Source of the DNA: Heteronotia binoei
Taxonomy: Eukaryota
Length of the DNA: 64,000 nt
Assembly (NCBI RefSeq): GCF_032191835.1
Contig: NC_083226.1
Coordinates: forward strand, 16,864,001 to 16,928,000
Reading direction: 5' to 3'
Part shown: in pieces, positions 847-45,074 of the stretch
How the letters are laid out: the number at the start of each line of letters is the position of its first letter
Position numbering within the stretch: position 1 is the stretch's first letter
Translations under genes and position numbers: made by a program
Notes under the pieces: generated by a model
What the model saw: only the letters and a program-made list of their open reading frames with translations
Told to the model about the DNA's origin: nothing
The model's database searches: none

Positions 847-982
847 GGGACGCTGGTGGCCGGCTGCTTCCACGACGTGCTGCTGCTGTATCTCAAGGCC
901 CTGAACGAGACGCTGCAGGAAGGTGGAACCAAGCAGAACACCAGCCGCATCCTGGAGAAGATGAGGGGCCTGAAATTCCAGG
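847..982 (+). CDS. NPR2-like ectodomain gene, copy 1, exon 4 (exons 1-3 lie left of the window)
   Basis: cag|GGG...CAG G|gt, 136 nt; GTLVAGCFHDVLLLYLKALNETLQEGGTKQNTSRILEKMRGLKFQ matches NPR2 exon 4 ([24 protein letters not shown]..KMQG). Confidence 0.93.
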
Positions 983-1631: not shown

Positions 1632-1767
1632 CAGGGGTAGGGAACGTTGGCTCTCCAGATGTTTTTTTGCCTACAACTTCCATCAGCACCAGCCATTGGC
1701 CATGCTGGCTGGGGCTGATGGGAGTTGTAGGCAAAAAACATCTGGAAAGCCAATGTTCCTACCCCTG
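1632..1767. mobile_element. Palindromic hAT-type MITE inserted in a reverse-strand tRNA-SINE (paralogous copy at about 21953-22089)
   Basis: caggggtag...ctacccctg TIRs; 8-bp TSD cactacac (perfect in copy 2, one mismatch in copy 1). Confidence 0.85.
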
Positions 1768-1810
1768 CAGTACACCAAACTGCCTCTCCCTCCCTGCCCC
1801 CCCCTTCCAG

Positions 1811-1905
1811 GTGTCACTGGGACGGTGAGCCTCAATAGACACAATGACCGAGAGATGGATTTTGACCTGTGGGCCATGAGGGATGTGGAGAGCGGAGAAT
1901 TCCAG
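1811..1905 (+). CDS. NPR2-like copy 1, exon 5
   Basis: ccag|GT...CAG|gt, 95 nt, phase 1 to 0; GVTGTVSLNRHNDREMDFDLWAMRDVESGEFQ vs NPR2 [32 protein letters not shown]. Confidence 0.93.
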
Positions 1906-2161
1906 GTGTGTGTATGGGGGGGGGGAGGTGTCTGCCACAATAGGTGGGGGAGAGTCCCCAAGCAGCCCCACTGGGTCTCTGAATGGGCTGGTATGCCCCA
2001 AAAAGCTACTAGAGAGACCTGAGTGGGAGTAGGGGACCTGAAGGTGGTGGGAGGTGGAACGCCAGGGCCTCCATTGGGAGGGGGTTCTGGGAAGTTGTAA
2101 CAGACATGGAGGAAGGTGCCCCCTGGGTCTGTGGTCTGAATCCAGCCCCTTCTTCCCACAG

Positions 2162-2344
2162 GTGGTGGCTCAATTTGTGGGCACAGAGAATCAGATGAAC
2201 TGGCTGGGGCCCATCCACTGGAAGAAGGGGAGCCCTCCTCTCGACAACCCGCCCTGTGTCTTCGACATGGATGACCCCTCCTGTGGTAAGAGTGGGCGTG
2301 TCCAAGGGTTAGAGGGACTTCATCTCACTGTCCTGCCACAGTAG
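2162..2344 (+). CDS. NPR2-like copy 1, exon 6 (ancestral donor probably at 2291; read-through stop ends 2344)
   Basis: acag|GTG; VVAQFVGTENQMNWLGPIHWKKGSPPLDNPPCVFDMDDPSCGK vs NPR2 [26 protein letters not shown]; read-through adds SGRVQGLEGLHLTVLPQ then TAG. Confidence 0.88.
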   Translation: MVAQFVGTENQMNWLGPIHWKKGSPPLDNPPCVFDMDDPSCGKSGRVQGLEGLHLTVLPQ

Positions 2345-3407
2345 CCGTTCCTAAACCCTTTCATCCCCTCTGCCACCCCCAGTGGTGATAAGTCTGCCAG
2401 GCAGGACAGCTCAGAGTAGGAATGTTCAAACGCCTGCCATTTTGCCTCACGTTCTGCTCTCTGGTTGGGAGCACAGAGCTGGTTCTTCACCAAACGGTTT
2501 GGCGATTCACAAGCTGCCGACATCTTTTTATTGGGTAAGTTTGTGCATATCCATACAGTACGGTTGGCATTATTCCACATCTGTGTGCTCTCACACATCT
2601 GAATGGGAGTTCTGGTTTCCTCCTCTCGTGTAGACCCGCTGTCACTGCTCCTGCATGGCAGCCGATCCTAAAAACAGACAGCAAATTGTTCAGTCTGATA
2701 GTAATGATGGTTTATTTCTTACCATTTGGTGCTCATTTTATTGCTGGTGATCATTGGAGGTTTTCACACATGCACATTTTTGCTCAGCCTTATGGGATTT
2801 TAGTTGTCTCTCCATGTCATTTAATCATCTGAAGGAGCCTCAGTTTCCCCAGCTGCACAGAGGCAAGAGACGCTGGAAAGAGAGAAGGAAATGAAACCGA
2901 AGCCCCACAGCTTGTGCCCTTCTCTCCATCCCCACCGCTGAGTCGCTTTTGGGTGGTTTCTGATAGAGCGCTTAGCCAGTTGGACGCATTTGTCTTCAGA
3001 ACAAGACACTGAGCCAATCCAGATTGGAAAGTGAAGCCTGAGTAATTTACAGTGCTTTGTGATGGGCATTCATGTTGCCATCCCCAGTGTGCCCTTCCAC
3101 CCACACTCTGCAGGCTGAAGTGGGGGTTCCGATCAGAGAGGATGGTCCTCTCCCCCCCCCCCCCAAGTAGGGATGTTCTAACACTTCTCAGTTCATCTCA
3201 TGATCTGCTTCCTGATTGGAGGAGGGAACTGGTGGATTGCCAATCAGTTTGGCCATACCAGAGAATCTCAGGCCTCTGTCCCAGGTAAGTTTTTGCATAT
3301 GCAAACGATATAATGCAGTCAGCAGAATTTTGTACATCCCAGTGGAAGTCCTGCCTACACCCAAGATACTTGTTATCTCTGCTCCCTGCTCAGCAGTGAG
3401 TCATAAA

Positions 3408-3413
3408 AATAAA
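3408..3413 (+). terminator. Candidate poly(A) signal of copy 1 (copy 2 equivalent at 23713-23718)
   Basis: AATAAA about 1.05 kb after the read-through stop in both copies, followed by a GT/T-rich stretch. Confidence 0.4.
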
Positions 3414-5294
3414 CGTTGAGAAAATGAATTGGTTGAACAATGATTATAAATTTTGTAGTGGTTTTAATGTTTGGTCGTGATCTCATTGAGAACTGGAGGG
3501 CATAGTGCACAGAGCTCAAATTGGCACAGGTTGTGTGGTTGTGACCTCTTGTGAAGCCAAGTTGTGTGGGCAACCCCATCGGTGACCCCACAAGCACCAT
3601 CCCAGATCCCCTTGGGGATTCATGTTCCCATCAAGTCTCCTCCTGGGGCCAGCTGTGGGCCTGCCTCAGCAGAAGTGACGCTCTCCTGCCCGGCTCCAGA
3701 TGCGAGACATCCCATTGCCTGGTTCAGCAGGGTCTGCATCGACCCACCCGGAATGGATGCTGCCCCCCCCAGCAGCTTACAGGTGAGGAAGGGGCTTGGG
3801 AAACTCCTCCACACAAACAGAAGCCTTGTGCCTGCACACTGGGGGGGGGATTCACAAGAAGGCTGGTTGGGGTCACTCTGGGAAGGGACTGCCCTCTCTG
3901 GGTGGCTCCTGGGCAGCTGGATGTCCTCAATGGGTCCTCCTTCATTTGGGGATCACTCCTTTTCTAGAGGGACAAGGCTGCATGACCATGACTCTCCCCT
4001 CCCCCTCCAGCCAGGCACTCAGAAGGAGAACTTCAGTGGAGACTCCAGTTCCTGCGACTAGCTCATCGGTGACCTTGTGGAGGTGAAGGATTGTGAGGAA
4101 GGACCAGGGAGAGGTGTGTGTGTGTGTAGAGCTGGTGGGCATTGTGAGGTCAAAGAGGGAGGGGCAGTTGCTAAAGACAGCTGAGAGACCCCCCACTGAA
4201 AGCCCAAGGGGGATTCCTTCTCTCTCTACCACTGATGTTCTCCCTCCAGATCTCAGAAGCTCTTTCATAGCTAGAGGGAGAGGTGAGCCTTGCTGGGCAC
4301 CAGGCCTGTAACCTCTCAGGGGTCTTTTCTCAGCCACCCCTGTGAATTTGACAGAGGTGGGCTTGCTCTCCAGTGGGCTAACACATCTTCCATGCTTTCG
4401 GGGGCTTTCTCAGTGGCCTCTTCCATTCCCTTCACAGCATCATTGGGTACCATGACTGCCTCAAGTCTTCTGACTCTTGGTGAACAGTGGCTGGGCACTC
4501 AAGATCTCCAGTGGTGGGCTGGTCAGTTTCCAGCAGAGCAGGAAAAGTGAGTGAAACCAGGCTTTTTCCATGCACCACCCCACAATGGCAGTACCTTTCC
4601 CATTGGCGAGGCCTTCCTTCCTCCCCATCCCCCCAAAAAGGAGAGCCCCCGTGACATCACTCAGCCTTGCTATTCCTGAGCCCATTTGAAGTGGTCCTCT
4701 GTATGCTGCACTTTTGCAGGATCCCCTTCTGACCTTTCTCTCTTTCTCCATCCCTTGCTTTCTCCTCCCTGCCCCTCCGAAGAAGCTGCCACCTTGCAGA
4801 GGCAAGAAGCGGAAGAGAAGTTTTGGGATCATCTCAAGAGAGACCGACAGCTGTGTGCAGCGGTGCTTTCTCTGTGGAGGGCAGTGACCTCAGCCACAAG
4901 GAGGAAGAAGGAAGAGCTCCATTGGCTTGCAAGAAGCCAAAACCTGCCTTGTTGTAGCTGCATTTTTGAGCCCCCACCTGGTTCCTCTCTTCTCATTCCC
5001 CCCATGCCAGGCATTTCACGACTGAGTGCTGGAAGCAGACCTTTGGCTCTTGTGGCATCTCCAGGAGGGGGTGGAACCTCCAGTGGACAAGGGGCCTCCC
5101 TCTCAGTCACTTGGCTGTGGGCTGCTTTGGGGAACACCTTGTTCCTCACGTCAGGAGGTCTCTCGGCATCGTGTGAACCCGCCCTTGCCAAAGGCACATT
5201 CACCCAGCAGCCCGAAAGCTGCATTTCCAGAGGCAGTGGAGGGGGGCGCATGCCCAGGGGATGTGGATCTCCATGCCTGTGAGGGAAGTCACCT

Positions 5295-5700
5295 CTTCTC
5301 CAGCAATAGAGGACTGGTGGTCGAGATGGTGGAACTTGCAGAGATGGCCAAACTTCCGTCTTTGACAAAAGAGAAGACTTCATTTTATACCTTTATGGAT
5401 TTCTTGTGTGAAGAGCAAAAAAGGTGAACTGATGACTTATGGTTTTGAAGGTTAAAAGGCAAATACGTTTCTGCAGAAAGGTGATAAATTTCCCCTGGTC
5501 TGATACCAGGCAAAAGGTGTAATGAGGAAATGTATGGTTTTTTGTAACTGAGATCATTGGATATTCCTTCCTTCTTTTTAACTGTAGTATCTGAATTGCT
5601 ATTTTCCCTCTTTTTTGCAGGGGTTAAAGTTGTAATGAGGAAATGTATGGTTTTTGGTAACTGAGATCATTGGATATCATTCCTTCTTTTTAATTGCACA
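5295..5700 (+). mobile_element. L1-type LINE 3' end with a roughly 110-bp duplicated tail (paralogue about 25600-26090)
   Basis: LVEMVELAEMAKLPSLTKEKTSFYTFMDFL resembles the squamate L1 ORF2 C-terminus. Confidence 0.65.
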
Positions 5701-8116: not shown

Positions 8117-8252
8117 CAGGGGTGGCCAACAGTAGCTCTCCAGATGTTTTTTGCCTACAACTCCCATCAGCCCCAGCCAGCATGACCAATGGCTGGGGCT
8201 GATGGGAGTTGTAAGCAAAAGACATCTGGAGAGCTACCGTTGGCCACCCCTG
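8117..8252. mobile_element. Palindromic hAT MITE
   Basis: caggggtggccaac...gttggccacccctg; TSD c/acatatgt (7/8). Confidence 0.88.
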
Positions 8253-10877: not shown

Positions 10878-11264
10878 NNNNNNNNNNNNNNNNNNNNNNN
10901 NNNNNNNNNNNNNNNNNNNNNNNNNNNNNNNNNNNNNNNNNNNNNNNNNNNNNNNNNNNNNNNNNNNNNNNNNNNNNNNNNNNNNNNNNNNNNNNNNNNN
11001 NNNNNNNNNNNNNNNNNNNNNNNNNNNNNNNNNNNNNNNNNNNNNNNNNNNNNNNNNNNNNNNNNNNNNNNNNNNNNNNNNNNNNNNNNNNNNNNNNNNN
11101 NNNNNNNNNNNNNNNNNNNNNNNNNNNNNNNNNNNNNNNNNNNNNNNNNNNNNNNNNNNNNNNNNNNNNNNNNNNNNNNNNNNNNNNNNNNNNNNNNNNN
11201 NNNNNNNNNNNNNNNNNNNNNNNNNNNNNNNNNNNNNNNNNNNNNNNNNNNNNNNNNNNNNNNN
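10878..11264. other. Assembly gap (387 N)
   Basis: Run of N. Confidence 1.
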
Positions 11265-11926
11265 CACAGAGTGTTGGACTGGATGGACCACTGGCCTGAT
11301 CCAACAGGGCTTCTCTTATGTTCTTATGTGACGCAGAGTGTTGGACTGGATGGGCCACTGGCCTGATCCAACAGGGCTTCTCTTATGTTGTTATGTGACG
11401 CAGAGTGTTGGACTGGATGGGCCACTGGCCTGATCCAACAGGGCTTCTCTTATGTTGTTATGTGAGGCAGAGTGTTGGACTGGATGGGCCACTGGCCTGA
11501 TCCAACAGGGCTTCTCTTATGTTGTTATGTGACGCAGAGTGTTGGACTGGATGGGCCACTGGCCTGATCCAACAGGGCTTCTCTTATGTTGTTATGTGAC
11601 GCAGAGTGTTGGACTGGATGGGCCACTGGCCTGATCCAACAGGGCTTCTCTTATGTTCTTATGTGACGCAGAGTGTTGGACTGGATGGGCCACTGGCCTG
11701 ATCCAACAGGGCTTCTCTTATGTTCTTATGTGACGCAGAGTGTTGGACTGGATGGGCCACTGGCCTGATCCAACAGGGCTTCTCTTATGTTCTTATGTGA
11801 CGCAGAGTGTTGGACTGGATGGGCCACTGGCCTGATCCAACAGGGCTTCTCTTATGTTCTTATGTGACGCAGAGTGTTGGACAGGATGGGCCACTGGCCT
11901 GATCCAACAGGGCTTCTCTTATGTGA
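11265..11926 (+). repeat. 67-bp tandem array (at least 10 copies) of the CR1 LINE 3' terminus
   Basis: Unit gcagagtgttggactggatgggccactggcctgatccaacagggcttctcttatgttnttatgtgac matches the CR1 ends at about 35065-35123 and 47565-47625. Confidence 0.92.
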
Positions 11927-13456: not shown

Positions 13457-14914
13457 ACATTGGGCTGACGTTGGGCTAGAGGGCGCGTGCAAGAAGAGGC
13501 CGTTCTGGCCCTCAAGTGGGGCGGTGGGGGTAGGGGTGGTGGAGGGCTCCATTGCAGACAGGGCAGGGTAGGGTAGACTGGCGCACACAAGTGAAGGTCC
13601 CGGCTGCAGTCCGGGGCTGGGGATCAGTGGAGAGGTGATGTTCACCTGACAGGAAGAAATCGGAATTGGAGGTCTTGTAGCCCCAGAAGTCAGTTGTGAC
13701 TTGGTGGCGCCTTTCACCGCCCCCCCCTTGTTCCGCTGGGCTTGTCTAGCTGGATCATGCTACAGGTAAGGGCAGGAGACCGTGCGGCACATATCTAAAC
13801 CTCTGAGTGGATCCCCACCAGAGCTGCTTTGAGGAGGGGTGGAAAGGAATCACCTTAGGGCAGCTGTGGGAGCGGGGAGGCTGTATGGCAGCGAGCTGTC
13901 AGCTTTCCTCCTCAGCGGTGGTAGGAGAGAAGGCCATGGAGGTTGGGGCCACTATGTGCCCCCTGAAAGCCATCAGGGCCCCCCAATTCTTCAAATCTTG
14001 GCTACGGGACTGGGTTCAGGGTCAGTGGCTACGGCTTTCTGTTTTCTAGGAGGACGGCCGACTCTGGGCAGGGTCCTCCCCAGAAGCCTGTAGAACAGAA
14101 AGAGGGGGGGGGAGGCAGTGGAATGGTTACAAATTGTACTTTTACACCTGGGAGATCTTGCACATTTTGTGTGGATCCCTTTAGCGTGGCTGCAGCTTCC
14201 TGTGCTCTAGGAGGATGGCCACTCTCCACAGCATTTCCCAAGAAGCCTGGGGAACAGGAAGGGGGGGGGGGGTTAAGGGCTTCAAAGGGTACTTTCCAGC
14301 GTCTTCACCGAGGACAAAGAGGGGGGCTCCGGTGGGACAACCTGAAGCTCATATGAGAGAATATTTTGCATTAAGGGTTGCCTCCCTAGGAACTCCGCTG
14401 CCTCTTCACAACACAGGCACGCTGGGCATGGCTTTGTGCCACTAGCACCTGCCTGGCATCCTCGTGCCGGTGCAGCCGGAGAGAAGCAGCAGCCGGCAGA
14501 GGGCAGGCCCCTCCACTCCCTCATCACTTCTCTTGGAAGGACTGAGCTGCAGGGGCATCTCCTGTGTGGAGACTCAAATCGACCTTTCCCACCTTCACAT
14601 CTGGGGCAGGGGGATTGTTCTGAATCTTTTTTTCCAGGCTAATTGTACTGACGAGCAGGCTCCGAGTATCAGGAACCAGAAGAATGCCTGGATGGAGCCG
14701 TCCAGTCCAAAGGTCCAGATTCCAGAAAGGCAGACCAGGCAGCTTCAGTGGTTGACCAAGGAAGGCGGGGAATGTTGAGGAAGCAGCGATGGCTGGGCTA
14801 ATAAATAGGGGCGCCAGCGCTGGTTTTGGGAAATACTGGGAAACTGGTGGATGGAAACTGGGCAGGGTGGGCTTTGGCCACGGAGGAACCTCAGCACGGT
14901 ATAATGCCATAGAG

Positions 14915-15050
14915 CAGGGGTGGCCGACGGTAGCTCTCCAGATGTTTTTTGCCTGCTACTCCCATCAGCCTCAGCCATTGGTCATGCTGGCTGGGGCTGA
15001 TGGGAGTTGTATGCAAAAAACATCTGGAGAGCTACCGCTGGCCACCCCTG
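14915..15050. mobile_element. Palindromic hAT MITE
   Basis: caggggtggcc TIRs; perfect TSD ccatagag. Confidence 0.9.
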
Positions 15051-15819
15051 CCATAGAGCCCATCTTTCAGAACAGCCACTTTCTCCAGAACAGATCGCTG
15101 TCTGTAGACCACTTATAATTCTGGGCACTCACCCCCCCCCCCTTAAGGCTGGCAACCCTTCTAATGGAGCTCAATCTAGTCCAGACAGGTGCTCTTGACT
15201 GGTTTGGGCACTGATCAGAGGTCTGGAAGACAGCCTCCTTCAGCAGGACAGTTAGGGGGGACTCGGAGACGGGAAGGCAGATCTCTGCTGCAGTGGCTGG
15301 ATAGCACCTTTCCTCCTGCTTCCGCCAATTCCCCATGGGTGGCTCTTCCCTGAGAAACGGGGTCCAATCTCTGGCCGTTGTAAGCCTTCTGCAAGGGAGT
15401 GGGGATGGGGGTGCAGAGGAAGGGATGCATGGGGGGAGATTCAGAACTAGCAGGGGGACAGAGGTTGGGATTTTTGGGGGTCCCATTGTGCATCACTTTA
15501 ATACTTACCAACCCTGAACTTCCTTTGCCACATTGTCACCTGCTCACCCAGTTTGTGGCCACCCTCTGGTGTGATCGAGGCTTGGTGGGTTTCTGTTCAG
15601 ACTCAGGTTTTCTCCCCCAGTGCAGTGGGGGAGGCACGACTTTGTGAGGAAATCCTGCCCCATGGCACCTGCTCCCCCTCCTCCTCAAAGTGGGGCTTTG
15701 GGAAGAGGGGTTGAGATCCAGGCTTCAATTCAAACGTGGTTGTGGAGGGCGACTTGAGGATAAACTGGAGGGGGCTTGATGCCCGTTTCCTAACCGGGGA
15801 GGGGGGGATTCATCTAGAA

Positions 15820-15943
15820 CAGGGGTGGCCAACGGTAGCTCTCCAGATGTTTTTTTGCCTACAACTCCCATTGGCCATGCTGGCTGGGGCTGATGGGAGT
15901 TGTAGGCAAAAAACATCTGGAGAGCTACCACTGGCCACCCCTG
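15820..15943. mobile_element. Palindromic hAT MITE
   Basis: caggggtggcc TIRs; perfect TSD atctagaa. Confidence 0.9.
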
Positions 15944-15959
15944 ATCTAGAAGAGCTGGA

Positions 15960-17100
15960 TCACCGCCAGGCGCGGAGCTGCCAATGATGGAGGTGTGGGG
16001 CTGTTGCTTTGGGGGCAATCGGGGGCTCAGGAGGGCCCACCGGCAATCCCTGGCAGCCCACCGGGAGAAGCGGGCAGCATTCAGCTCTAGTTCCCGCCTG
16101 GTTCCTCCCACCTGCGGCCAGGAGAGGTGTGCGCGGGAGGGCGCAGAGGGGCGGCCCCCCCGACTTCCCCCCGCCCCCGAGGAGGCCTCTGGAGGGAGGG
16201 AGGGCCGTGCAGGGGCGCCTTTTCCGAGGGAGCGCAGCGCGGCCGCCCCACAGACGGGCTCTCCCTGCCTTCTGCTGCCGCCCAGAGCTCCTCGCCCGCC
16301 CCGTCCATGGCGCCACCGCCCCTCCTGCTGCTGCTGCTGCCGCCAGCCCTGCTGGGGGTGCCCTCCGCCGCCTCCTCCGCCCAGGCCAGCGCCGCCCCGT
16401 CGGGGGACCTGACTTTGGGGGTGCTGCTGCCGGGGCGCAACGTGAGCTACCCCTGGGCCTGGCACCGCATCAAACCCGCCCTGAGCCTGGCGCTGGAGGC
16501 CCAGCTGCGCCCCCCAGGCCTCGCCCTCCGCACCGCCTTCGCCTCCACCGAGGGCCGGGATGGCGACTGCAACCGCTATGTGGCCCTGTGGGAGGCCGCG
16601 AAGCTGAAGTGCTTCCACGACCCGGACGTGCTGCTGGGGCCGGGCTGCGGCCACCCAGGCTACTCAGTGGGGCGCTTAGCCCAGCACTGGCAGCTGCCGC
16701 TCCTTCGAGCCGGGGCCTATGCAAGAAGACGCGCAGATCTCGGCAGCGCGGTGGTGTACGCCGGTCCCCTGGGGCCTGCCCTATTCGCCTTCGTGCCCCG
16801 GCTGCACCGGCGCTTCAACTGGACCTCCCGCGCCGTCCTTGTGTACGCTGAGAAGCTCCATGACTGGCAATACCATTACGCCTTCTTCAAGCGACTTGAA
16901 GAGGCCGTCTGGATCGCCGACTTCCACCGATATGGGCAGCCCGAGGAGACGGTCCGGTTCATCCGGGCCAAGGGGCGAGGTAAGCCAGCCCCCCCCGCCC
17001 CGCCCGCCCATCCGGAGCCGCCTCTCCCGCCCTGGGAGCGGCCCCTGCCCCCACCCCTCTGGGGCACCGATCCAGGGCTTTCTTTCTGCGGGGAAACGCG
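15960..17100 (+). promoter_or_regulatory. CpG island / promoter of NPR2-like copy 2
   Basis: Very high GC and CpG density around ATG 16307 (Kozak ccgtccATGG); GC boxes upstream. Confidence 0.75.
16307..16979 (+). CDS. NPR2-like copy 2, exon 1 (signal peptide plus ANF-receptor ligand-binding domain)
   Basis: MAPPPLLLLLLPPALLG signal peptide; LTLGVLLP, YPWAWHRIKPALSLALE, HDPDVLLGPGC, HWQLPLL, FNWTSRA and FIRAKGR match NPR2/NPR1 exon 1; donor G|gtaagc, 673 nt. Confidence 0.95.
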
Positions 17101-17167
17101 GCTGAACGGAGTTCCTGGACCTCTTGGGGGAAACAAGATTATTATTTTTTTAAATGTCCAAATGTCG

Positions 17168-17425
17168 GGACCAGTTTGGTGCAGTGGTTGAGCCTGCCCA
17201 CTCTTATCTGGGAGAACCGGGTTTGATCCCCACTCCTCCACTGGCACCTGCTGGAATGGCCTTGGGTCAGCCATAGCTCTCATAGGAGTTGTCCCTGAAA
17301 GGGCAGCTGCTGTGAGAGCCCTCTCAGCCCCACCCACCTCACAGGGTGTCTGTTGTGGAGGGGGGGGGGGAGATTGTGGCTGCTCTGAGATTGAGAGAAA
17401 AGGGCAGGATATAAATCCAATCTCA
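17168..17425 (+). mobile_element. tRNA-derived SINE with L2-like tail (Squam3-type); further copies at 38755-38965(-), 48088-48365, 49820-50085(-), 55730-56000 and 57868-58155
   Basis: cagtttggtgtagtggtt A-box, gggtttgattcccc B-box, tail cccacctcacagggtgtctgttgtgggg...gatataaat. Confidence 0.85.
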
Positions 17426-19836
17426 TCTTCATTTCCCTCTGGAGACTTCTGGCCCCTCTTTTTCGGAGGGGGGACCCTGACAGCCCCTCTCCCAATCTTC
17501 AAGAGAGGAGGGAAGGCCGTGGGTGAGGAAGGCATGTTGTGGAGGGCGAGAAGGCAGTGGGCCTAGAGATGCACATCGAACAGAAGGGGGCAGTCAGTGT
17601 CTTCTGGGAAGGGAGCCCCTCCCCCAGGCCTCCCTCCAGCCTCAGCTCCCTCCTCCCACACTTAAGAAAAAGCTGGTGTACTTCTTGCAGTGGCTGTAGG
17701 ACATAATTTTCACTCACAAATCCACAGAGGTTCGTTGCCTCTGAATGTATTCCAGTATTTTCTCTGTTATTTTCCCAATTTTTTTTAGACCTGGAAAACA
17801 GGTATTTTGTGAGTTTGCGGCAACTGTGGTGTGGACTTGCCCAGTGCTCTGGAGGCTTCTTGCCTCAAGCTGATTCTTGGCTTCATGAGGTTTTTCTCGC
17901 TCACCTCATGGTAGCTCACTGGGGGTTTTTCGTAGAAATAATTATAGGGAAACATTAAAAAAAAAACAATTGCAGTGGCCTTAGGGAACAATTCAAGCCC
18001 CTCTCCCTTTTAGGGAACAACTTGATTTTATTTACTTTACTGATTCCACCTCTTTACCCCCAGTGAGGACCTCCAGCATCTGACCTGTTTCTTCCGTCAC
18101 CCATGTTATGTCTCACAACAGCCCTGTGAGGGAGGCTAGGCTGAGAGTGTGGGACTGGGCCAAGGTCTCTCAACGAGCTTCTGTGGTGTGGGGGGAGCGG
18201 GTTTGAACCTTGGATTCCCAGAACCTTCTCTAGGAATACAACCTTTTTATTAAAGGCGGAGCTTGGTAGAATGCGTACACAAATTCTAAAGCTATGGAAG
18301 GATCCATATTTTTAATGAATTTTGTACCACTGAAGCACCATGAAATATGTGGTTTTTGTGATGAAGTTCATTGACAAGAGTGTGATATGTGTTCAGAATT
18401 TGGACTGGGATGGAGTCCAAGTGAAATAAGAACACCAAAAGGGCACCCACTTTTTTATACCATGGCAGCGCTATGAAATGCTGGATCCATGATTTTGATG
18501 GTTTTGTTCGCGGCAAGCTGTGATACAACCGATGTACTCTGTTGTTTCAGTAGCCCTGTACATCTCTGTGGTATAAATGTGTGTCCAGCCCATTGTACAG
18601 GCATACATCCATCTCTAAGGAAGATTTGGGGAACTAGTACTGGATAAACCTAGAGTTTGTACCACACGTTCAGCTATGGATCCGATAAGTGTAACACAAG
18701 ACTTACTCAGCACACTTACAAAGAACAATCAGGTACACTCTGCATTAGGATTGTAAGTGTGTCCGGGGTGACTTGTGAGCAGGACTTGAGTAAAAATAGT
18801 ATGAATTCATGAAGATCCGTCCCCTGAATCCATGTTTTTTCACCATGATGCTGACCACAGAACTGGATACGTGTTTTCCTTTGTGCAGTTTGTGGACATC
18901 AGTGGATTCTGTACACTTTTTGTGTGTGTTGTGGGGTCTGATGTAAAAATCATGAAGAAACGTCAAGATTTCTACCTTGACTCCATTTTTTTGGCTCGAT
19001 GGTGGTGTCAGGAAGTGTTGGATCTTTATTATCTCATGTTCCGTCTATAGACTTTGAGATATAGACCTTTGCAGTGAATTTCAGTAGAGTCAGGGGCCCC
19101 ACCATGCCCCCCCTCCGCAGCACCCTCACAGTCCCACCACCCACACCCTTCTGCCCCCCCACCGAGGGCGTGTGCCACATAGGGGGGTGGGGAGGGTGTG
19201 CGCGGCAGCCATGCGACGGCCAGGCAACGTTCTGAGCCCACAGAGGCTGCACGCCATCCAGCTACTGTCGCTCCGCGGAGGCAGAGGTGGAGGGACAGCG
19301 ATCGGACAGTGTGTGGGCCTCTGCAGTGCTCAGAGTCTTGCTGGGGCCCGTGGAGGTTGGAAGGGTGCATGCGACTGGACAGAGAGGGTGCCACAGAGGA
19401 GGTTGGCAGGGTAACGGATGGCGAGTGGCTCTCCTCCCGGGTGATATCAATCACCGGGGGGGCAATTGGGTCCCCCCGCACCCCAGGCATGTGCCTAATT
19501 TGCCTACAGGTGGGTCACCACCGAGTGCAGCCCACGTAAAAGTGATGAGAATCCATCCACCATGGCGCCATGAATTGCTCGGTCCATGAGCTTTAAAGTG
19601 CAGTCTGGGAAAATGTCCTCCTTGATTGACGCGGGTGAGGAGGACACCTGGCTGCCAGCACTGGGGAGGGGGGACTGCAACACAATGCTCATGTGACAAG
19701 GAGCCAACGAGCCAGATAATGCAGAGCATCCTAAGTCAAACCTTGCGCTTCATGCTCATTGCCCCTCACTGCCTGCCCTCTGCTCCTTGCTTGCGTCTGA
19801 CACACACTCCTCTGGGTGGGGGTGGTTTCTCCTTAG

Positions 19837-20039
19837 TGGTCTACATCTTGGGGCCCCATAAGATGTTGCAGGAGATCATGCACCAGGCACAGGCTCAGAA
19901 CATGACCAGCGGTGACTACGTCTTCATCTACCTGGACATTTGGGGGGGAAGCCTGAGAGCTGAGGGGCATCGTGAGGCCAAGAAGCCCTGGCAGAGCATG
20001 GAGAGCCAAGATACAGGAGTCCTCCGAGAGGCCTTCCAG
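19837..20039 (+). CDS. NPR2-like copy 2, exon 2
   Basis: ttag|TG...CAG|gtaaga, phase 1 to 0; VVYILGPHKMLQEIMHQAQAQNMTSGDYVFIYLD...LREAFQ. Confidence 0.95.
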
Positions 20040-20142
20040 GTAAGACCAGGACTCTGCTGCAGGGAGGGAAGGAAGGAAAGGGAGACTTGGGAGCAGAGTT
20101 CCAACCAGCTGGAGCTCCCTTGACCTTTTCCTCTAATTGCAG

Positions 20143-20256
20143 ACGGTGCTGGTGGTCGCTGCTCATGAGCCCCAAACCCCTGAATACCGGCGTTTCCAGA
20201 GCCAGCTGGTCCAGCGTGCCCAGAGGGACTTTGGTGTGGCTGTGAATGACTCCGTG
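20143..20256 (+). CDS. NPR2-like copy 2, exon 3
   Basis: gcag|ACG...GTG|gtaaat, 114 nt; TVLVVAAHEPQTPEYRRFQSQLVQRAQRDFGV. Confidence 0.95.
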
Positions 20257-21174
20257 GTAAATCTACACACCCCTGCTTGCATGCCTTCTTCTGCACTCTT
20301 ATTATGGGAGGGAGTGAAGAGCCCTTTATGAGAAGTGAGGAGAGACAGATCAGCCAGCCTTCCGGGGCCACAAACACTTTCCCCCTTGGCCTTGTGGAAG
20401 AAACGACCCAGGAGAATCCCCAGGGTTGGGGTTGAGGAAGGCAGCTACGGCTTGGCTTTGCAGGTGGGTCACCAGGGTTGGCTTGATAGGTGGAGGTCAG
20501 AATTTGCCCCTGGTCATGCAGGATGTTTGCAGTGGTCGCCTTGGCAGTTCTCTCTTCTGGGCAACCCCTGTGGCTTCCTCCCACCTGGCTTTCTCAGTCA
20601 CTGTCCTGAGTGCCTTCTCAGTTGTGCTCCCTGTGCTGGGTGGTTCAGTCTCGGGGCTGTCCACTTCGCCCTCCCCGTTTCCTCACATTCACTGCCCACA
20701 CCCAGCATGGACACAAGTGTTCTGCCTTCCTTGTGTGCTTTAAGGCTTGCCTCTTGTCAGCCAGGTCTGGACTGCTCTTCCCTCCCAGCGGATGCTGTCG
20801 TCCCTCCAGGCGTCTCCTCCATGTCATAGTTGAAGAGGGGTGAATCCCAGGCCTTGTATCTCTGGTGGGCTGCCAGTTCTAAGCTTGCTTGAGGCATGGT
20901 GGTCACCAAACCCACACAGACCCTTGATTCCCAGCTTCAGACCCCTGCCCCAGCTAAAGAGTAGCTGCTGGTCTGGAGCCATTCAGGGGCCCTCTGGCTC
21001 CCAGATATTTGAGCTTAGACCATCAGGGGCCACCACATGTCACTTCACATGACTCCAATAGCAGAGTTCTGTCTAGATTGTCCTTCAGGTCCAAGGCAGT
21101 GGCTGCCAGTGAGGCTGCGGGGAACAAGATCGTTCCATTCCGTTTCTCTCCCTCTCTCTCTCCCCCTGTGGCAG

Positions 21175-21310
21175 GGGACGCTGGTGGCCGGCTGCTTCCA
21201 CGACGTGCTGCTGCTGTATCTCAAGGCCCTGAACGAGACGCTGCAGGAAGGTGGAACCAAGCGGAACACCAGCCACATCCTGGAGAAGATGAGGGGACTG
21301 AAATTCCAGG
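21175..21310 (+). CDS. NPR2-like copy 2, exon 4
   Basis: 136 nt, phase 0 to 1; GTLVAGCFHDVLLLYLKALNETLQEGGTKRNTSHILEKMRGLKFQ. Confidence 0.95.
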
Positions 21311-22132
21311 GTATTGGAGGCTTGCCATGGGGGAAAGAGTGGCTGGGGGTTGGGGGACGGGGAGGTTGCCAGGAATTTGGGACTGGGGGTTGGGGGGAGG
21401 CAGCAAGTGGGTGCCCTGGGCTGAGACAGATCAGGCCAGGAGGGGGTGGGAATGGCAGAAGGGGGCTGGCTTTAGAGAGGAGCTGCCCCAGAGCCCGTCC
21501 AAGAGGTTAACTCAGCCATGGGTCACGAATGACAATGGATGCTGGGATCCTCAAAGAAGAAGAGTTTTTTCATGCCCCGCCCTTCACTACCCGGAGGAGC
21601 CTCGAAGGGGCTTCCAATCACCTTCCCTTCCTCTTCACACAACAGGCACTCTGTGAAGTAGGTGGGCGGGGCTGAAACTAGGCAGGGGCCGTGGGGGCAG
21701 CGCCCTCTCCCAAATCTGCCAGACACGCCCACTCCTGATCCCCTGACCCCCCTCTCGTTTATGCTCCTTTAATTAAATTAGCACCCCCTGGAGCCCCCTC
21801 CAGAAAAAAAATCCTAGATACGGGCCTGTGGCTGAGAGAACTCTGAGGGAACTATGGCTGGCCCTGGGTCACCCAGCTGGCTTCATGTGGGAGAGGACTA
21901 GAGAATCGAACCCGGTTCTCCAGATTAGAGTCCACTGGTCTTAACCACTACACCAGGGGTAGGGAACGTTGGCTCTCCAGATGTTTTTTTGCCTACAACT
22001 TTCATCAGCACCAGCCATTGGCCATGCTGGCTGGGGCTGATGGGAGTTGTAGGCGAAAAACATCTGGAAAGCCAATGTTCCTACCCCTGCACTACACCAA
22101 ACTGCCTCTCCCTCCCTGCCCCCCCCTTCCAG

Positions 22133-22227
22133 GTGTCACTGGGACAGTGAGCCTCAATGGAGACAATGAACGAGAGATGGATTTTGACCTGTGGGCCATG
22201 AGGGATGTGGAGAGCGGAGAATTCCAG
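22133..22227 (+). CDS. NPR2-like copy 2, exon 5
   Basis: 95 nt, phase 1 to 0; GVTGTVSLNGDNEREMDFDLWAMRDVESGEFQ. Confidence 0.95.
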
Positions 22228-22482
22228 GTGTGTGTATGGTGGGGGGAGGTGTCTGCCACAATAGGTGGGGGAGAGTCCCCAAGCAGCCCCACTGGGTCTC
22301 TGAATGGGCTGGTATGCCCCAAAAAGCTACTAGAGAGACCTGAGTGGGAGTAGGGGACCTGAAGGTGGAGGGAGGTGGGACGCCAGGGCCTCCATTGGGA
22401 GGGGGTTCTGGGAAGTTGTAACAGACATGGAGGAAGGTGCCCCCTGGGTCTGTGGTCTGAATCCAGCCCCTTCTTCCCACAG

Positions 22483-22665
22483 GTGGTGGCTCATTTTGTG
22501 GGCTCAGAGAACCAGACGAACTGGCTGGGGCCCATCCACTGGAAGAAGGGGAGCCCTCCTCTCAACGACCCGCCCTGTGTCTTCGACATGGATGACCCCT
22601 CCTGTGGTAAGAGTGGGTGTGTCCAAGGGTTAGAGGGACTTCATCTCACTGTCCTGCCACGGTAG
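22483..22665 (+). CDS. NPR2-like copy 2, exon 6 (ancestral donor probably at 22612; read-through stop ends 22665, giving a 467-aa precursor)
   Basis: VVAHFVGSENQTNWLGPIHWKKGSPPLNDPPCVFDMDDPSCGK, then SGCVQGLEGLHLTVLPR and TAG. Confidence 0.88.
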   Translation: MVAHFVGSENQTNWLGPIHWKKGSPPLNDPPCVFDMDDPSCGKSGCVQGLEGLHLTVLPR

Positions 22666-25600
22666 CCGTTCCTAAACCCTTTAATCCCCTCTGCCACCCC
22701 AGTGGTGATAAGTCTGCCAGGCTGGACAGCTCAGAATAGGAATGTTCAAACGCCTGCCATTTTGCCTCACGTTCTGCTCTCTGGTTGGGAGCACAGAGTG
22801 AGTCTTCACCAAACGGTTTGGCGATTCACAAGCCGCTGACATCTTTTTATTGGGTAAGTTTGTGCATATCCATACAGTACGGTTGGCATTATTCCACATC
22901 TGTGTGTTCTCACACATCTGAATGGGAGTTCTGGTTTCCTCCTCTCGCGTAGACCCGCCGTCACTGCTCGCTGCATGGCAGCCGATCCTAAAAACAGACA
23001 GAGAGCAAATTGTTCAGCCTGATAGTAATGATGGTTTATTTCTTACCATTTGGTGCTCATTTTATTGCTGGTGATCATTGGAGGTTTTCACACATGCACG
23101 TTTTTGCTCAGCCTTATGGGATTTTAGTTGTCTCTCCATGTCATTTAATCACCTGGATGAGCCTCACTTTCCCCTGCTGCACAGAGGCAAAAGATGCTGG
23201 AAAGAGAGAAGGAAATGAAACCGAAGCCCCACAGCTTGTGCCCTTCTCTCCATCCCCACCGCTGAGTCGCTTTTGGGTGGTTTCTGATAGAGTGCTTAGC
23301 CAGTTGGACGCATTTGTCTTCAGAACAAGACACTGAGCCAATCCAGAGTAATTTACAGTGCTTTGTGATGGGCAGTCATGATGCCATCCCCAGTGTACCC
23401 TTCCATCCACACTCTGCAGCCTGAAGTGGGGGTTCCGATCAGAGAGGATGGTCCTCTCCCCCCCACCCCAAGTAGGGATGTTCTAACACTTCTCAGTTCA
23501 TCTCATGATCTGCTTGCTGATTGGAGGAGGGAACTGGTGGATTGCCAATCAGTTTGGCCATACCAGAGAATCTCAGGCCTCTGTCCCAGGTAAGTTTTTG
23601 CATATGCAAACGATATAATGCAGTCTGCAGAATTTTGCACATCCCAGTGGGAGTCCTGCCTCCACCCAAGATACTTGTTATCTCTGCTTCCTGCTCAGCA
23701 GCCAGCCATAAAAATAAACATTGAGAAAATTAATTGGTTGAACAATGATTATAAATTATTGTAGTGGTTTTGATGTTTGGTCGTGATCTCATTGAGAACT
23801 GGAGGGCATAGTGCACAGAGCTCAAACTGGCACAGGTTGTGTGGTTGTGACCTCTTGTGAAGCCGAGTGGTGTGGGCAACTCCATCGGTGACCCCAGGAG
23901 CACCATCCCAGATCCCCTTGGGGATTCATGTTCCCATCAAGTCTCCTCTCGGGGCCAGCCGTGGGCCTGCCTCAGCAGAAGTGACGCTCTCCTGCCCGGC
24001 TCCAGATGCGAGACATCCCGTGGCCTGGTTCAGCAGGGTCTGCATCGACCCACCCGGAATGGATGCTGCCCCTCCAGCAGCTTACAGGTGAGGAAGGGGC
24101 TTGGGAAACTCTTCCACACAAACAGAAGCCTTGTGCCTGCACACTGGGGGGGTGGGATTCACAAGGGGGCTGATTGGGGTCAGTATGGAAAGGGACTACC
24201 CTCTCTGGGTGGATCCTGGGCGGCTTGATGTCCTCAATGGGTCCTCCGTTATTTGTGGATCACTCCTTTTCTAGAGGGACAAGGCTGCATGACCATGACT
24301 CTCCCCTCCCCCTCCAGCCAGGCACTCAGAAGGAGAACTTCAGTGGAGACTCCAGTTCCTGCAACTAGCTCATCGGTGACCTTGTGGAGGTGAAGGATTG
24401 TGAGGAAGGACCAGGGAGAGGTGTGTGTGTGTGTAGAGCTGGTGGGCATTGTGAGGTCAAAGAGGGAGGGGCAGTTGCTAAAGACACCTGAGAGACCCCC
24501 CACTGAAAGCCCAAGGGGGATTCCTTCTCTCTCTACCACTGATGTTGTCCCTCCAGAGCTCATAAGCTCTTTCACAGCTAGAGGGAGAGGTCAGCCTTGG
24601 TGGGCACCAGGCCTGTAACCTCTCAGGGGTCTTTTTTCAGCCAACCCTGTGAATTTGACAGAGGTGGGCTTGCTCTCCAGTGGGCTAGCACATCTCCTTT
24701 CATGCTCTCAGGGGTTTTCTCAACGGCATCATCATCTTCCATTCCGTTCACGGCATCATTGGGCACCATGACAGCCTCAAGTCTTCTGACTCTTGGTGAA
24801 CAGTGGCTGGGCACTCAAGATCTCCAGTGGTGGGCTAGTCAGTTTCCAGCAGAGCAGGAAAAGTGAGTGAAACCAGGCTTTTTCCACACACCACCCCACA
24901 ATGGCAGTACCTTTCCCAATGGCAAGGCCTTCCTTCCACCCCATCCCCAGAAAAAGGAGAGCCCCCGTGACAGCACTCAGCCTTGCTATTCCTGAGCCCA
25001 TTTGAAGTGGTCCTCTGTTTGCTGCACTTTTGCAGGATCCCCTTCTGACCTTTCTCTCTTTCTCCATCCCTTGCTTTCTCCTCCTTGCCTCTCCGAAGAA
25101 GCTGCCACCTTACAGAGGCAAGAAGCGGAAGAGTAGTTTTGGGATCATCTCAAGAGTGACAGACAGCTGTGTGCAGCTCAGCCGCAAGGAGGAGGAAGGA
25201 AGAGCTCCATTGGCTTGCAAGAAGCCAAAACCTGCCTTGTTGTAGCTGCATTTTTGAGTCCCCACCTGGTTCCTCTCTTCTCATTCCCCCATGCCAGGCA
25301 TTTCACGACTGAGTGGTGGAAGCAGACCTTTGGCTCTTGTGGCATCTCCAGGAGGGGGTGTGGAACCTCCAGTGGACAAGGGGCCTCCCTCTCAGTCACT
25401 TGGCTGTGGGCTGCTTTGGGGAGCACCTTGTTCCTCACATCAGGAGGTTTCTCGGTATCGTGTGAACCTGCCCTTGCCAAAGGCCCCTTCACCCAGCAGC
25501 CCGAAAGCTGCATTTCCAGAGGCAGTGGAGGAGGGCGCATGCCCAGGGGATATGGATCTCCATGCCTGTGAGGGGAAGTCACCTCTTCTCCAGCAATAGA

Positions 25601-26099
25601 GGACTGGTGGTCAAGATGATGGAACTTACAGAGATAGCCAAACCTACGTCTTTGACGAAAGAGAAGACTTAATTTTATACCTTTATGGATTTCTTGTGTG
25701 AAGAGCAAAAAAGATGAACTGATGACTTATGGTTTTGAAGGTTAAAAGGCAAATACATTTCTGCAGAAAGGTGATAAATGTCCCTTGGTCTGATACCAGG
25801 CAAAAGGTGTAATGAGGAAATGTATGGTTTTTGGTAACTGAGATCATCGGATAGCATTCCTTCTTTTCAACTATAGTATCTGAATTACAATTTTCCCTCT
25901 TTTTTGCAGGGGTTAAAGTTGTAATGAGGAAATGTATGGTTTTTGGTAACTGAGATAATCGGATTCCTTCTTTTTAATTGTGGTATCTGAATTACAATTT
26001 CCCCTCTTTTTTGCAGGGGTTAATCTGTTTACTTTTGTTTCTTTGTTCTTCCTCCCTTATTATCTGTATTTAAAACTCTCATGAAATGTTTTTAAAAAA

Positions 26100-27295
26100 C
26101 AGCACCTGTGCTTCCCTGCAGGTTCACACAATCACAGAACTGGCAGGGGCCCTAGAGGCCATTTAGTCCAACCTCCTGCTCAATGCAGGATCAGCCTGGA
26201 GCATCCCGGACAAGTGTTAGTCCAGCTGCTGCTTCAAGACTGCCAATGAGGGGGAGCTCACCACCTCTGTTGCCGGTGAGGGGTTGCTAATTCCTCTGTT
26301 GAACAGTGCTTACTGGAGAAAAGGTTTTTCCTAATATCCAGCTGGTACCTCCCGATCCTTAGTTTTAACCCAGTGTTGTGAGTCCTCTCCTCTGCTGCCA
26401 ACAGGAACAGCTCCCTGCCCTCCTCTAAGTGACAGCCCTTCAAATGCTTCAAGAGAGCTATCATGTTCCCCCTCAGCCTCCTCTTCTCCAGACTGAACTC
26501 TAGACCTCCAGGCTCTTGGTCTCCAGACCCCCGATCATCTTCCTCGCTCTCCTCTGCACCTGCTGCATTCTGTCCACATCCTTTGTGAAGTGAGGCCTCC
26601 AGAACTGCACACAACAGGGCTTTTTTTGAGCAGGAACACACAGGAACGCAGATCTGGCTGGCTTGGCATCAGGCGGAGTGGCCTGATATGCAAGTGAGCT
26701 GATAGGCCTTCAGTATAAAGAGCCCTGTGCGAAACAATGGTGATGTCACTGGGTGTGGCCTGATATGCAAATGAGTCCCTGCTGGACTTTTTCTGCAAAA
26801 AAAAGCCCTGGCACACGATACTCCAGGTGCACCTGACCAATGCTGTGTACAGTGGGACTATGATGTCTTGTAATTTGGATGTTCTGCCTGTGTTGATACA
26901 CCACAAGATGGCATTAGCCTTTTTTCTCACTCTATCACACTGGCTGCTCATCTTTAACTTCCTGTCCACCCAAGATCTTCTTCACACACACCACTACCCA
27001 GGGGCCGTTTTGTAGGGAAAAAAGCGGTGGAGCTCATCCAGGGCTTGTTATGCAGCTGCACCTACTATTCAGTGGACAAGGTGGGAAGGAGGAGGTGGAG
27101 TTGCCAGAAAGGTCCAGGAGCTGTGCTCCTGCGAGCTCCCGCTGAATCCGAGGTCTGCCACTGCCCATCCAGTGTGCGTGTTGCTCATTTTTGTTACCCG
27201 CATGTAAAACTCAGCGCTTATCCTTGTTGAGCTGCATCTTATTCACATCTGCCCACTTTTCCAGTGTGTTCAGATCTCGCTGAATTCTATCTCGG
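26100..27295 (-). mobile_element. CR1 fragments with nested hAT MITEs (about 26615-26810 and 27000-27155)
   Basis: Reverse-strand KLKMSSQCD..KKANAILWCI and FSLEKRRLRGNMI; cagggcttttt...aaaaaagccctg TIRs. Confidence 0.75.
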
Positions 27296-34629: not shown

Positions 34630-35123
34630 GCAGAGGCCAACTAGAATGATTACAGGTTTGGAGCACTTTCCCTATGAAGAAAGGTTAAAACGCTTGGGGC
34701 TCTTTAGCTTGGAGAAACGTCAACTGCGGGGTGACATGATAGAGGTTTACAAGATTATGCATGAGATGGAGAAAGTAGAGAAAGAAGTCCTTTTCTCCCT
34801 TTCTCACAATACAAGAACTCGGGGGCATTCAATGAAATTGCTGAGCAGTCGGGTTAGAATGGATAAAAGGAAGTCCTTCTTCACCCAAAGGGTGATTAAC
34901 ATGTGGAATTCACTGCCACAGGAGATGGTGGTGGCCGCAAGCATAGCCAGCTTCAAGAGGGGGTTAGATAAAAATATGGAGCAGAGGTCCATCAGTGGCT
35001 ATTAGCCACAGTGTGTATATATGTGTATGTGTGTATATATATAAATTTTTGGCCACTGTGTGACAGAGTGTCGGACTGGATGGGCCATTGGCCTGATCCA
35101 ACATGGCTTCTCTTATGTTCTTA
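34630..35123 (+). mobile_element. CR1 LINE 3' end; similar ends at 47205-47625, 62790-63237 and 52262-52630(-)
   Basis: EHFPYEERLKRLGLFSLEKRQLRGDMIEVYKI; tail ggcctgatccaacatggcttctcttatgttctta. Confidence 0.92.
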
Positions 35124-39539: not shown

Positions 39540-39686
39540 GTGCGGCGCCATGAGATGCATAAGTCAAAGAACAAAGCCCTGGTACGTTCGGAATTGCAAG
39601 AGAAGGCGTTAAAGAGCAAATGGAAGAAACAGAAGGCAAGAGTTCCTGAGTCTTTGGAAAGAAGAAAACTGGCCCTAATGAGAGAG
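39540..39686 (+). CDS. SPICE1: SPICE1 exon 3
   Basis: [32 protein letters not shown]...LALMRE. Confidence 0.95.
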
Positions 39687-39814
39687 GTAAGATCTCTGTG
39701 GCTTCCATCATTAACAGCTTCTTTCAAAATGCACAATATATTTTCTGTGCGCCGCAATCTTGTGGGTCTCGGCTCTTAGTAGACCAGTAGCGTTCACTCT
39801 GAATTGTGGAGAGC

Positions 39815-40327
39815 CATGTTTGCAGAACTTGGCCTGGATGAAGCACAAGCTTCATTGATTGGAGGGAAAAACATCAACAACCTCAGATATGCAGGTGATG
39901 ATACTCTAATGGCAGAAAGTGAGGAGGACCTAAAGAACCTCTTGTCGAGGGTGAAAGAGGAGAGCACAAAAGTAGGCTTGAAACTCAACATCAAAAAAAC
40001 TAAGTTCATGGCATCCGGCCCCATCACTCCTTGGCAAATAGAAGGGGAAGACATGGAAGTCGTGACAGACTTAAATTTCTGGGATCCAAGATCACTGCAC
40101 ATGGTGACTGTAGCCATGAAATTAAAAGACGCTTGCTCCTTGGGAGGACAGCTATGGCAAACCTAGGCAGTATAATAAAAAGTAGAGACATCACCGTGCC
40201 AACGAAAGTCCATATAGTCAAAGCCATGGTATTCCCAGTAGTAAGGTATGGCTTTGAGAGTTGGACCATAAGGAAGACTGAGTGCAGAAAAATAGATGCT
40301 TTTGAGCTGTGGTGCTGGAGAAGACTC
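39815..40327 (+). mobile_element. RTE-BovB LINE RT fragment
   Basis: NINNLRYAGDDTLMAESEEDLKNLLSRVKEESTKVGLKLNIKKTK; FELWCWRRL. Confidence 0.92.
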
Positions 40328-44955: not shown

Positions 44956-45074
44956 GTAACAGGATTTCGGGGTTTAAGATGTGTCATAATGCTGTGATCC
45001 TGTGCAGTTACGCTGCTCTAAGCTCACTGAAAAACAGGCTTAGATTGGAGTGACTCTGCATAGGCTTGCACTGA

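Follow-up and report, generated by a model that had tools for sequence, protein, structure and literature searches.

Tandem ectodomain-only paralogues of NPR2 in Bynoe's gecko: a diversifying family of probably secreted binding proteins

What can a hormone receptor do once the parts that span the membrane and signal inside the cell are gone? The question is raised by a gene in a 64,000-nucleotide stretch of the genome of Bynoe's gecko, Heteronotia binoei (C4:16864001-16928000; hereafter, the window), which at 16307-22665, on the plus strand, encodes the complete ligand-binding ectodomain of a natriuretic peptide receptor and then ends. The best overall explanation, which we consider likely, is that the gene encodes a secreted ectodomain derived from NPR2 and belongs to a gecko family that is diversifying. 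The product is probably a secreted glycoprotein of 467 amino acids that would form the head-to-head dimer typical of NPR ectodomains; the proteins would not signal, and most members of the family probably no longer bind natriuretic peptides. The evidence comes from the anatomy of the gene, from searches of the 2.63 Gb genome and of protein collections, from the pattern of selection across paralogues, from public RNA runs, and from structure predictions.

Gene anatomy and the decayed intracellular part

The gene and the sequence directly downstream of it are laid out below. The RNA joints and depths refer to runs X1 and X2 (small metatranscriptomic) and X4 and X5 (transcriptomic), which carry the same species label and were mapped to 19800-25700.

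16307 to 16979, plus strand: exon 1, with the start codon, the signal peptide and the first 224 ectodomain codons; open frame; donor G/GTAAGC
19837 to 20039, plus strand: exon 2; AG/GT borders; RNA joint 20039/20143 in X5
20143 to 20256, plus strand: exon 3; AG/GT borders; joint to exon 4 seen in a paralogue's form in X1
21175 to 21310, plus strand: exon 4; AG/GT borders; RNA joint 21310/22133 in X4 and X5
22133 to 22227, plus strand: exon 5; AG/GT borders
22483 to 22612 (or 22606), plus strand: exon 6, ending in the juxtamembrane motif PPC..DPSC
22613 to 22665, plus strand: read-through tail and TAG stop (22663-22665); the protein ends GKSGCVQGLEGLHLTVLPR
22666 to 23740, plus strand: probable 3' untranslated region (UTR), ending after AATAAA at 23713-23718; exon-like depth in X5
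23866 to 24087, plus strand: kinase-homology exon relic 1, reading VCIDPP, a frame shift, then CPSSSLQ (NPR2 has FIGACIDPP..CPRGSLQ)
24711 to 24862, plus strand: kinase-homology exon relic 2, reading HHDSLKSS..LKISSGGL with an internal frame shift and a stop (NPR2 has HGSLKSS..LKITDYGL)
25099 to 25215, plus strand (approximate): kinase-homology exon relic 3, mapped here from a 73% match to NPR2 in the upstream copy at 4819-4899

An earlier note on this DNA, made from the letters of the window, had described a signal peptide and six exons with intact frame and GT-AG junctions that cover the whole ectodomain, and this description holds: the six exons together encode 448 amino acids in one unbroken frame, with every junction GT-AG. 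Exon 1, the fast-evolving part of the gene, contains nearly all positions homologous to the hormone contacts of NPR-A, and it alone matches NPR-A ectodomain structures at E = 3e-30 and NPR-C at 3e-12. The juxtamembrane cysteines are retained, as are C60 and C86 (NPR-A numbering). Exon 5 shares 75-85% amino-acid identity with six distant paralogues and 94% with a close paralogue, annotated as P0001, and exon 6 shares 85% DNA identity with exon 6 of the gecko's own NPR2. That NPR2 lies on scaffold C58 and NPR1 on C1; exons 2-6 are 58-74% identical to the former, and a match to NPR1 was found for exons 4-5 only, at 42-48%. Judged by this homology, the gene is a descendant of an NPR2 duplicate.

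The same note placed the exon-6 donor at 22606. A real GT does stand there (G/GTAAGA at 22606/22607), but the ancestral donor, recognized by homology with the gecko's own NPR2, is A/GTGGGT six bases later at 22612/22613. Read-through past the exon-6 donor adds 19 residues and gives the 467-residue product that the note had foreseen, with a polyadenylation motif about 1 kb on; the AATAAA at 23713 is the sole canonical signal on the plus strand between 22.6 and 26.2 kb, and the motif is kept in five of the seven copies compared (this gene, the upstream copy, and three of the five distant paralogues).

It had also been stated that neither transmembrane, kinase-homology nor cyclase exons follow in the gap-free sequence before SPICE1, the downstream gene. 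The sequence is indeed gap-free from 22.6 to 35.8 kb, the one run of Ns in the window being at 10878-11264, and for the transmembrane and cyclase exons the statement is borne out. We found no trace downstream of exon 6 of the transmembrane exon or of the first kinase-homology exons of NPR2; a local alignment of the NPR2 transmembrane exon with 22607-24000 scored under shuffled controls. Between 16 and 20 Mb on C4 there is no PF00211 cyclase hit, the nearest on the chromosome being at 40.9 Mb, 24 Mb off, and a search with the intracellular part of the receptor (NPR1 residues 455-1057) gave no match in the arrays or elsewhere in the same interval of C4. For the kinase-homology part the statement has to be corrected: three consecutive NPR2 kinase-homology exons lie at 23.9-25.2 kb, decayed and frame-broken, in the order that they have in NPR2. 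Because transmembrane and cyclase parts are gone and the kinase-homology part persists only as relics, we interpret the gene as a truncated NPR2 duplicate whose intracellular part has decayed. The only hydrophobic frame near the place expected for a transmembrane helix, open at 23010, straddles a point at which homology with several paralogues breaks, and we therefore did not accept it as an exon.

With no transmembrane or cyclase exon after exon 6, the protein should be soluble. A signal peptide, a complete ectodomain and no membrane anchor make up the architecture of a soluble decoy receptor, and from it we infer that the product is secreted.

A gecko family with diversifying contact positions

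The gene is far from alone. An exon-1 probe detected at least about 40 loci at 72-90% identity (40 of the 83 candidates were scored) on C4 at 16.73-17.28 Mb, 18.4 Mb and 19.2-19.63 Mb and on scaffolds C65, C164 and C51, and a probe of exons 4-6 plus 1.2 kb of downstream sequence detected at least 12 further loci that had not been seen with exon 1. From these matches the gene is one of at least 40-50 predicted tandem paralogues, a count biased upward by assembly redundancy, since family loci with identical scores occur in pairs or triplets (C164, C51 and C4:19.486 Mb; C4:18.408 Mb and 17.275 Mb) that are likely to be haplotigs or mirrored segmental duplicates; some of the copies on small scaffolds may thus be assembly duplicates. 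One neighbouring paralogue reaches into the window, which also contains SPICE1:

1 to 5696, plus strand: 3' part of the neighbouring paralogue, with 95% identity to 20329-25980
847 to 982, 1811 to 1905 and 2162 to 2291, plus strand: exons 4-6 of this paralogue, followed by the same read-through tail and relics as in the 16307 gene
39540 to 57460, plus strand: exons of SPICE1

A search of 5.8 billion protein sequences returned 51 matches at E <= 1e-30. Those with ANF_receptor as the only domain all come from geckos, namely H. binoei, Gekko kuhli, G. japonicus, Paroedura picta and Sphaerodactylus townsendi, and the non-gecko matches (skink, agamid, iguanian, snake, bird, mammal, frog and fish) all carry kinase and cyclase domains. 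Skink and other non-gecko matches to exon 1 were rejected as family members, being ordinary NPR2. The gene under study shares the characters of the gecko group: a six-exon ectodomain, a place in tandem arrays, PF01094 as its sole domain, and gecko origin. In Paroedura picta the family genes likewise stand in a tandem array; the 3' region is about 67% alike between Heteronotia and Paroedura, which is not above what neutral divergence could leave and was not used as evidence. The C-terminal tails of about 40 annotated relatives from the five gecko species are 2-141 amino acids long and mutually unrelated, and none of them has a 19-residue window over a Kyte-Doolittle mean of 1.65 or an end of transmembrane grade or resembling a glycosylphosphatidylinositol (GPI) signal. 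We found no paper on the family in the literature searched. It is known so far only as automatic 'NPR2-like' models with inconsistent ends; the gene itself is one of the gecko NCBI Gnomon models automatically named 'atrial natriuretic peptide receptor 2-like' (P0180).

The two parts of the coding sequence evolve differently. Every aligned exon is open in the upstream copy and in seven distant paralogues, five of these eight copies being aligned at all six exons. Between this gene and the distant paralogues, the ratio of nonsynonymous to synonymous divergence (dN/dS, omega) is 0.43-0.52 for exons 2-6, and on these ratios exons 2-6 are under purifying selection. The corresponding ratio for exon 1 is 0.89-1.63, and it is 1.05-1.81 against three close paralogues, which differ from this gene by about 52 nonsynonymous and 12 synonymous changes; pairwise bootstrap Z values for dN > dS were 0.2-2.3. 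Among close copies exon 1 is 90-91% identical, its flanks are 92-98% identical, and the 3' half of the gene is 94-96% identical.

We aligned 18 family members to exon 1 of mammalian NPR-A, in a numbering that reproduces C60, W74, C86 and C164, and compared sequence entropy at the positions homologous to the published NPR-A hormone contacts D62, Y88, R95, A111, E119, Y120, D160, R162, F165, F166 and E187 (bioRxiv 10.1101/2020.07.09.196394). Mean entropy was 2.59 bits at these 11 positions and 1.30 at the other 181 positions of exon 1 (Mann-Whitney p = 3e-5), and C60 and C86 were invariant across the alignment. The residues Y88, R95, A111, R162 and F166, all of them kept in NPR2, correspond to His, Arg, Ala, Gln and Ala in this gene, which has Gly120 at a further contact position and retains Asp160. 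It thus departs from the conserved set of natriuretic-peptide contacts, and the alignment as a whole indicates that the binding pocket is being re-specified across the family. Five natriuretic-peptide genes are present in the genome (three clustered at C18:3047995-3086255, and one each at C15:1552503 and C6:140425016), so the ligand genes show no expansion that would match that of the receptor-like family. Because the contact positions are hypervariable and there are only five peptide genes, most members are unlikely to bind natriuretic peptides; that is, their sequences argue against binding of the parent receptor's ligand.

These results bear directly on the proposal that the ectodomain is a decoy that binds CNP, ANP, BNP or snake-venom peptides and buffers or neutralizes them. 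Descent from NPR2, the preservation of the whole fold and its structural cysteines, and the retention of Arg95, Ala111 and Asp160 in this copy are what such a decoy would be expected to show, and rapid change at the contacts could in principle follow diversifying venom peptides. Yet across the family almost any residue is found in place of Tyr88, Arg95, Tyr/Phe120 and Phe166, which hold the conserved core of the peptides, and this copy itself has His88, Gly120, Gln162 and Ala166. Moreover, five peptide genes stand against at least 40 receptor-like genes, and the family occurs in geckos of different continents. We consider a natriuretic-peptide decoy unlikely.

The preferred reading, a secreted and diversifying ectodomain family, accommodates both halves of the pattern. 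Purifying selection would hold the fold's scaffold, made up of exons 2-6 and the structural cysteines, while the exon that lines the cleft diversifies, and a conserved scaffold combined with a diversifying cleft exon would make the family a repertoire of soluble binders whose pockets differ and probably accept peptides.

Transcripts, the 3' end and the site of expression

The joints between exons 2 and 3 and between exons 4 and 5 occur in RNA exactly as predicted, and the joint between exons 3 and 4 occurs in the form of a paralogue. In X1 and X2, k-mer depth is 190-1000 over the exons and 0-50 in intron bins, falling below 5 away from exon edges and from a short interspersed nuclear element (SINE)-like repeat in intron 4. 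In X5, introns 2-4 are silent and depth after exon 6 equals that of the exons, and a contig from X2 covers 22600-22785, across the exon-6 donor. The read-through tail is, in addition, the C-terminal end of the NCBI models P0179 and P0182, which represent two sister genes. The X5 depth, the X2 contig, the conservation of the AATAAA motif and the tails of the sister models all fit a read-through terminal exon. Most likely, then, exon 6 would run past its old donor, reach a stop after 17 further codons and continue into a 1.1 kb 3' UTR as far as the AATAAA at 23713.

At least one relative ends differently. In an X1 contig that derives from the paralogue at C4:17.25 Mb, the ancestral donor is spliced to a private exon lying 2 kb further on, where translation stops immediately, so that the protein ends DPSCGKG, three codons after the juxtamembrane cysteine. 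The contig shows directly that the family produces an mRNA for the ectodomain only. The private 3' exon (loci L024/L025; C4:17245134-17245163, minus strand) has a strong acceptor; it was rejected as a 3' end of the 16307 gene, since neither the window nor any of six other paralogues contains an equivalent. Also rejected as coding was the terminal exon of model P0001 (25300-25568 in the window): since it is frame-shifted here and not conserved as coding sequence, we treat it as untranslated.

Could the protein be held at the membrane after all, whether by a GPI signal, by a transmembrane exon that went unrecognized or by stable association with full-length NPR2? In support of this, the gene still has the ancestral exon-6 donor, which the paralogue just described uses, and some transcripts include spliced downstream exons. 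On the other side, the next exon of that paralogue stops translation at once, there is no transmembrane relic, the hydrophobic frame at 23010 straddles a breakpoint in paralogue homology, and none of the annotated tails has a suitable end. Anchoring of this kind is very improbable.

As to where the family is expressed, a liver virome study (PMC11160328) covers H. binoei with two libraries and H. planiceps with one, and runs X1-X3 fit these liver libraries in number, year, library type and species pattern. Liver expression of the family is accordingly only probable; at least some members would be made in an internal organ, probably the liver. That inference matters for a rival reading in which these proteins are secreted chemosignals or reproductive proteins rather than blood-borne binders. 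Families of that kind are typically marked by tandem expansion, restriction to one lineage and a binding lobe with dN/dS near or above 1, as seen here, whereas the high-depth runs probably come from liver, and on balance we regard a chemosignal or reproductive role as quite unlikely.

Several observations weigh against the reading of the gene as a secreted member of a diversifying family, or limit how far it extends to this copy. The 3' end given above for this copy is only the most likely one. Spliced transcripts traverse the relics (24087 to 24318 in X1; 24862 to 25099), so that the ancestral donor of relic 1 at 24087/24088 is still used in some transcripts and the acceptor of relic 3 at 25099 is in use, and model P0180, which is 100% identical to the gene over residues 26-448, splices exon 6 into relics; at 532 amino acids, it also has no signal peptide. 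We regard P0180 as partly homology-driven, and the transcript and model variants that run through the relics all do so without a transmembrane segment. The 31-letter words of exon 1 occur in no listed public run, which decides nothing either way, and the variant letters in reads after exon 6 are mostly those of the sister copy; expression is thus demonstrated for the subfamily and not for this gene. The tissue assignment depends on the unverified match of runs to the published liver study, pairwise tests give the excess of dN over dS only moderate significance (Z 0.2-2.3), and the entropy test leans on how variable loops were aligned and on contacts listed in one preprint.

Some of these points would also be explained if the family were functional and this copy, 16307-22612, were an unexpressed young pseudogene or silent spare: its exon-1 words are missing from the listed runs, the reads after exon 6 mostly carry the letters of its sister, and the NCBI model is odd at both ends. 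However, it has six open exons, canonical splice sites and an intact signal peptide, it shares 96-98% identity with sister copies over the promoter and 5' UTR, 10-35% of the mapped reads are at least 99% alike, and the public RNA runs may stem from divergent lineages of the species complex. A silent copy seems to us decidedly improbable.

The annotation shows one further irregularity. Model P0007 starts within the kinase-homology relic that belongs to the unit before it (4403-4743 and 24713-25059 are the segments concerned), and this start, like the missing signal peptide of P0180, suggests either transcription that runs between tandem units or chimeric models driven by homology.

Dimer model, related systems and a proposed role

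An AlphaFold model of residues 1-455 of the close paralogue P0001, which is 83% identical, reached a predicted template-modeling score (pTM) of 0.82 and superposed on the NPR-A ectodomain 1t34_A with template-modeling scores of 0.84/0.90 and a root-mean-square deviation of 2.4 A, and the gene accordingly encodes an NPR-type ectodomain of the periplasmic-binding-protein fold with conserved disulfides. Modeled as a homodimer, residues 30-452 of P0001 scored 0.34 (best of three controls, 0.02), a mark reached by 21 of 30 proteins solved as one-chain pairs and 0 of 23 single chains, and among eukaryotes by 17 of 29 and 0 of 30, respectively; since structures of NPR-A dimers exist already, the model may owe this result to having memorized them. 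The runs agreed in at least 85% of contacts, with a partner pLDDT of at least 78, and placed the interface, as in NPR-A, at the membrane-distal helix pair. Its closest contact is Cys101-Cys101. Cys101 replaces Trp74 of NPR-A in the subfamily (16604-16625 in the window; the Cys in LKC); a cysteine occupies this position in four close copies and P0001 and not in distant copies. The model suggests a disulfide-linked dimer.

Among known systems the closest is NPR2 itself, guanylyl cyclase-B, the CNP receptor and direct ancestor, with which the gene shares the six-exon ectodomain, the juxtamembrane cysteine motif and the exon-6 donor. It differs from NPR2 in having no transmembrane helix, no working kinase-homology domain and no cyclase, in the hypervariability of the hormone-contact positions that NPR2 conserves, and in occurring as tens of tandem copies in place of one gene. 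The clearance receptor NPR-C (NPR3) has likewise been stripped of its kinase and cyclase and works through binding alone, but it keeps a transmembrane helix and a short signaling tail and is a single conserved gene. The gecko gene is nearer to NPR-A/B than to NPR-C, as the E values for exon 1 indicate; it arose independently from NPR2 and is not an NPR3 orthologue. Truncated NPR-B splice forms and shed or soluble receptor ectodomains consist of the ligand-binding part without the cyclase and are minor isoforms of a full-length gene, whereas the gecko truncation is fixed in the genome and inherited by the whole family. Genome-encoded soluble decoy receptors such as osteoprotegerin are dedicated genes for a secreted ectodomain that sequesters a ligand, and they are usually single, conserved genes that keep the ligand of their parent. 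In contrast to decoys of the osteoprotegerin type, the gecko family is large and diversifies at its ligand contacts.

Set against this background, the functional proposals of the earlier note fare unevenly. Its dedicated gene for a soluble protein survives in that the product is ectodomain-only and has no transmembrane part; the gene is nonetheless one of at least 40-50 paralogues and does not stand alone as a dedicated locus. The buffer or decoy for natriuretic peptides that the note proposed finds no support as the principal interpretation, given that the contacts are the most variable positions, exon-1 dN/dS is about 1 or more, and the peptide genes number five. The idea of a scavenger persists only in a broadened form, that of diversified binders of probably peptide ligands, and not in the form specific for natriuretic peptides.

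A more specific version of the preferred reading, which we put forward tentatively and which is more doubtful than the family reading itself, is that geckos possess a germline-encoded humoral repertoire: dozens of liver-secreted, dimeric NPR2 ectodomains, with cleft diversity maintained by positive selection, that would capture foreign bioactive peptides in the blood, such as venom peptides of arthropod prey or snake predators, or microbial peptides. If this were true, the family would represent a new class of innate scavenger of toxins and peptides built on a hormone-receptor fold. Soluble binders derived from receptors are known as single conserved genes, and here there are at least 40 copies in one vertebrate lineage with diversifying contacts. 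Should the proteins circulate, reptiles would have a further, new family of binding proteins in their plasma. The family would also amount to a natural experiment in the re-specification of the NPR cleft that bears on the engineering of peptide traps, and it allows the annotation to be corrected, in that chimeric models and models without a signal peptide probably arise from relic exons and from transcription between units.

Other features of the locus were noted in passing. X4 contains a spliced minus-strand transcript at 22755-25100, opposite the probable 3' UTR and the relics, that joins the acceptor at 22986 (and 22994) to donors at 23851, 24085, 24200 and 25049 (CT..AC ends); its depth is 30-fold over 22755-22951, its molecules end near 22854, and no convincing open reading frame was seen in it. 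Fragments resembling the reverse transcriptase of long interspersed nuclear elements (LINEs) lie at 26144-27264 (minus strand) and 34676-34900 (plus strand), occur also in an intron of the true NPR2, and mark the onset of the break-up of homology between the two neighboring units. Directly 3' of the gap at 10878-11264 is a tandem array (11265-11924) of about ten 67-base units, and the unit recurs in introns of several paralogues. Finally, the 135-base repeat of intron 4 (21954-22089) has copies at 1632-1767, 8117-8252, 14910-15050 and 15797-15949, matches them in both orientations in the manner of a palindrome, and in X1 and X2 greatly exceeds the exons in RNA k-mer depth (about 13,000); it is probably an abundant SINE-type element.

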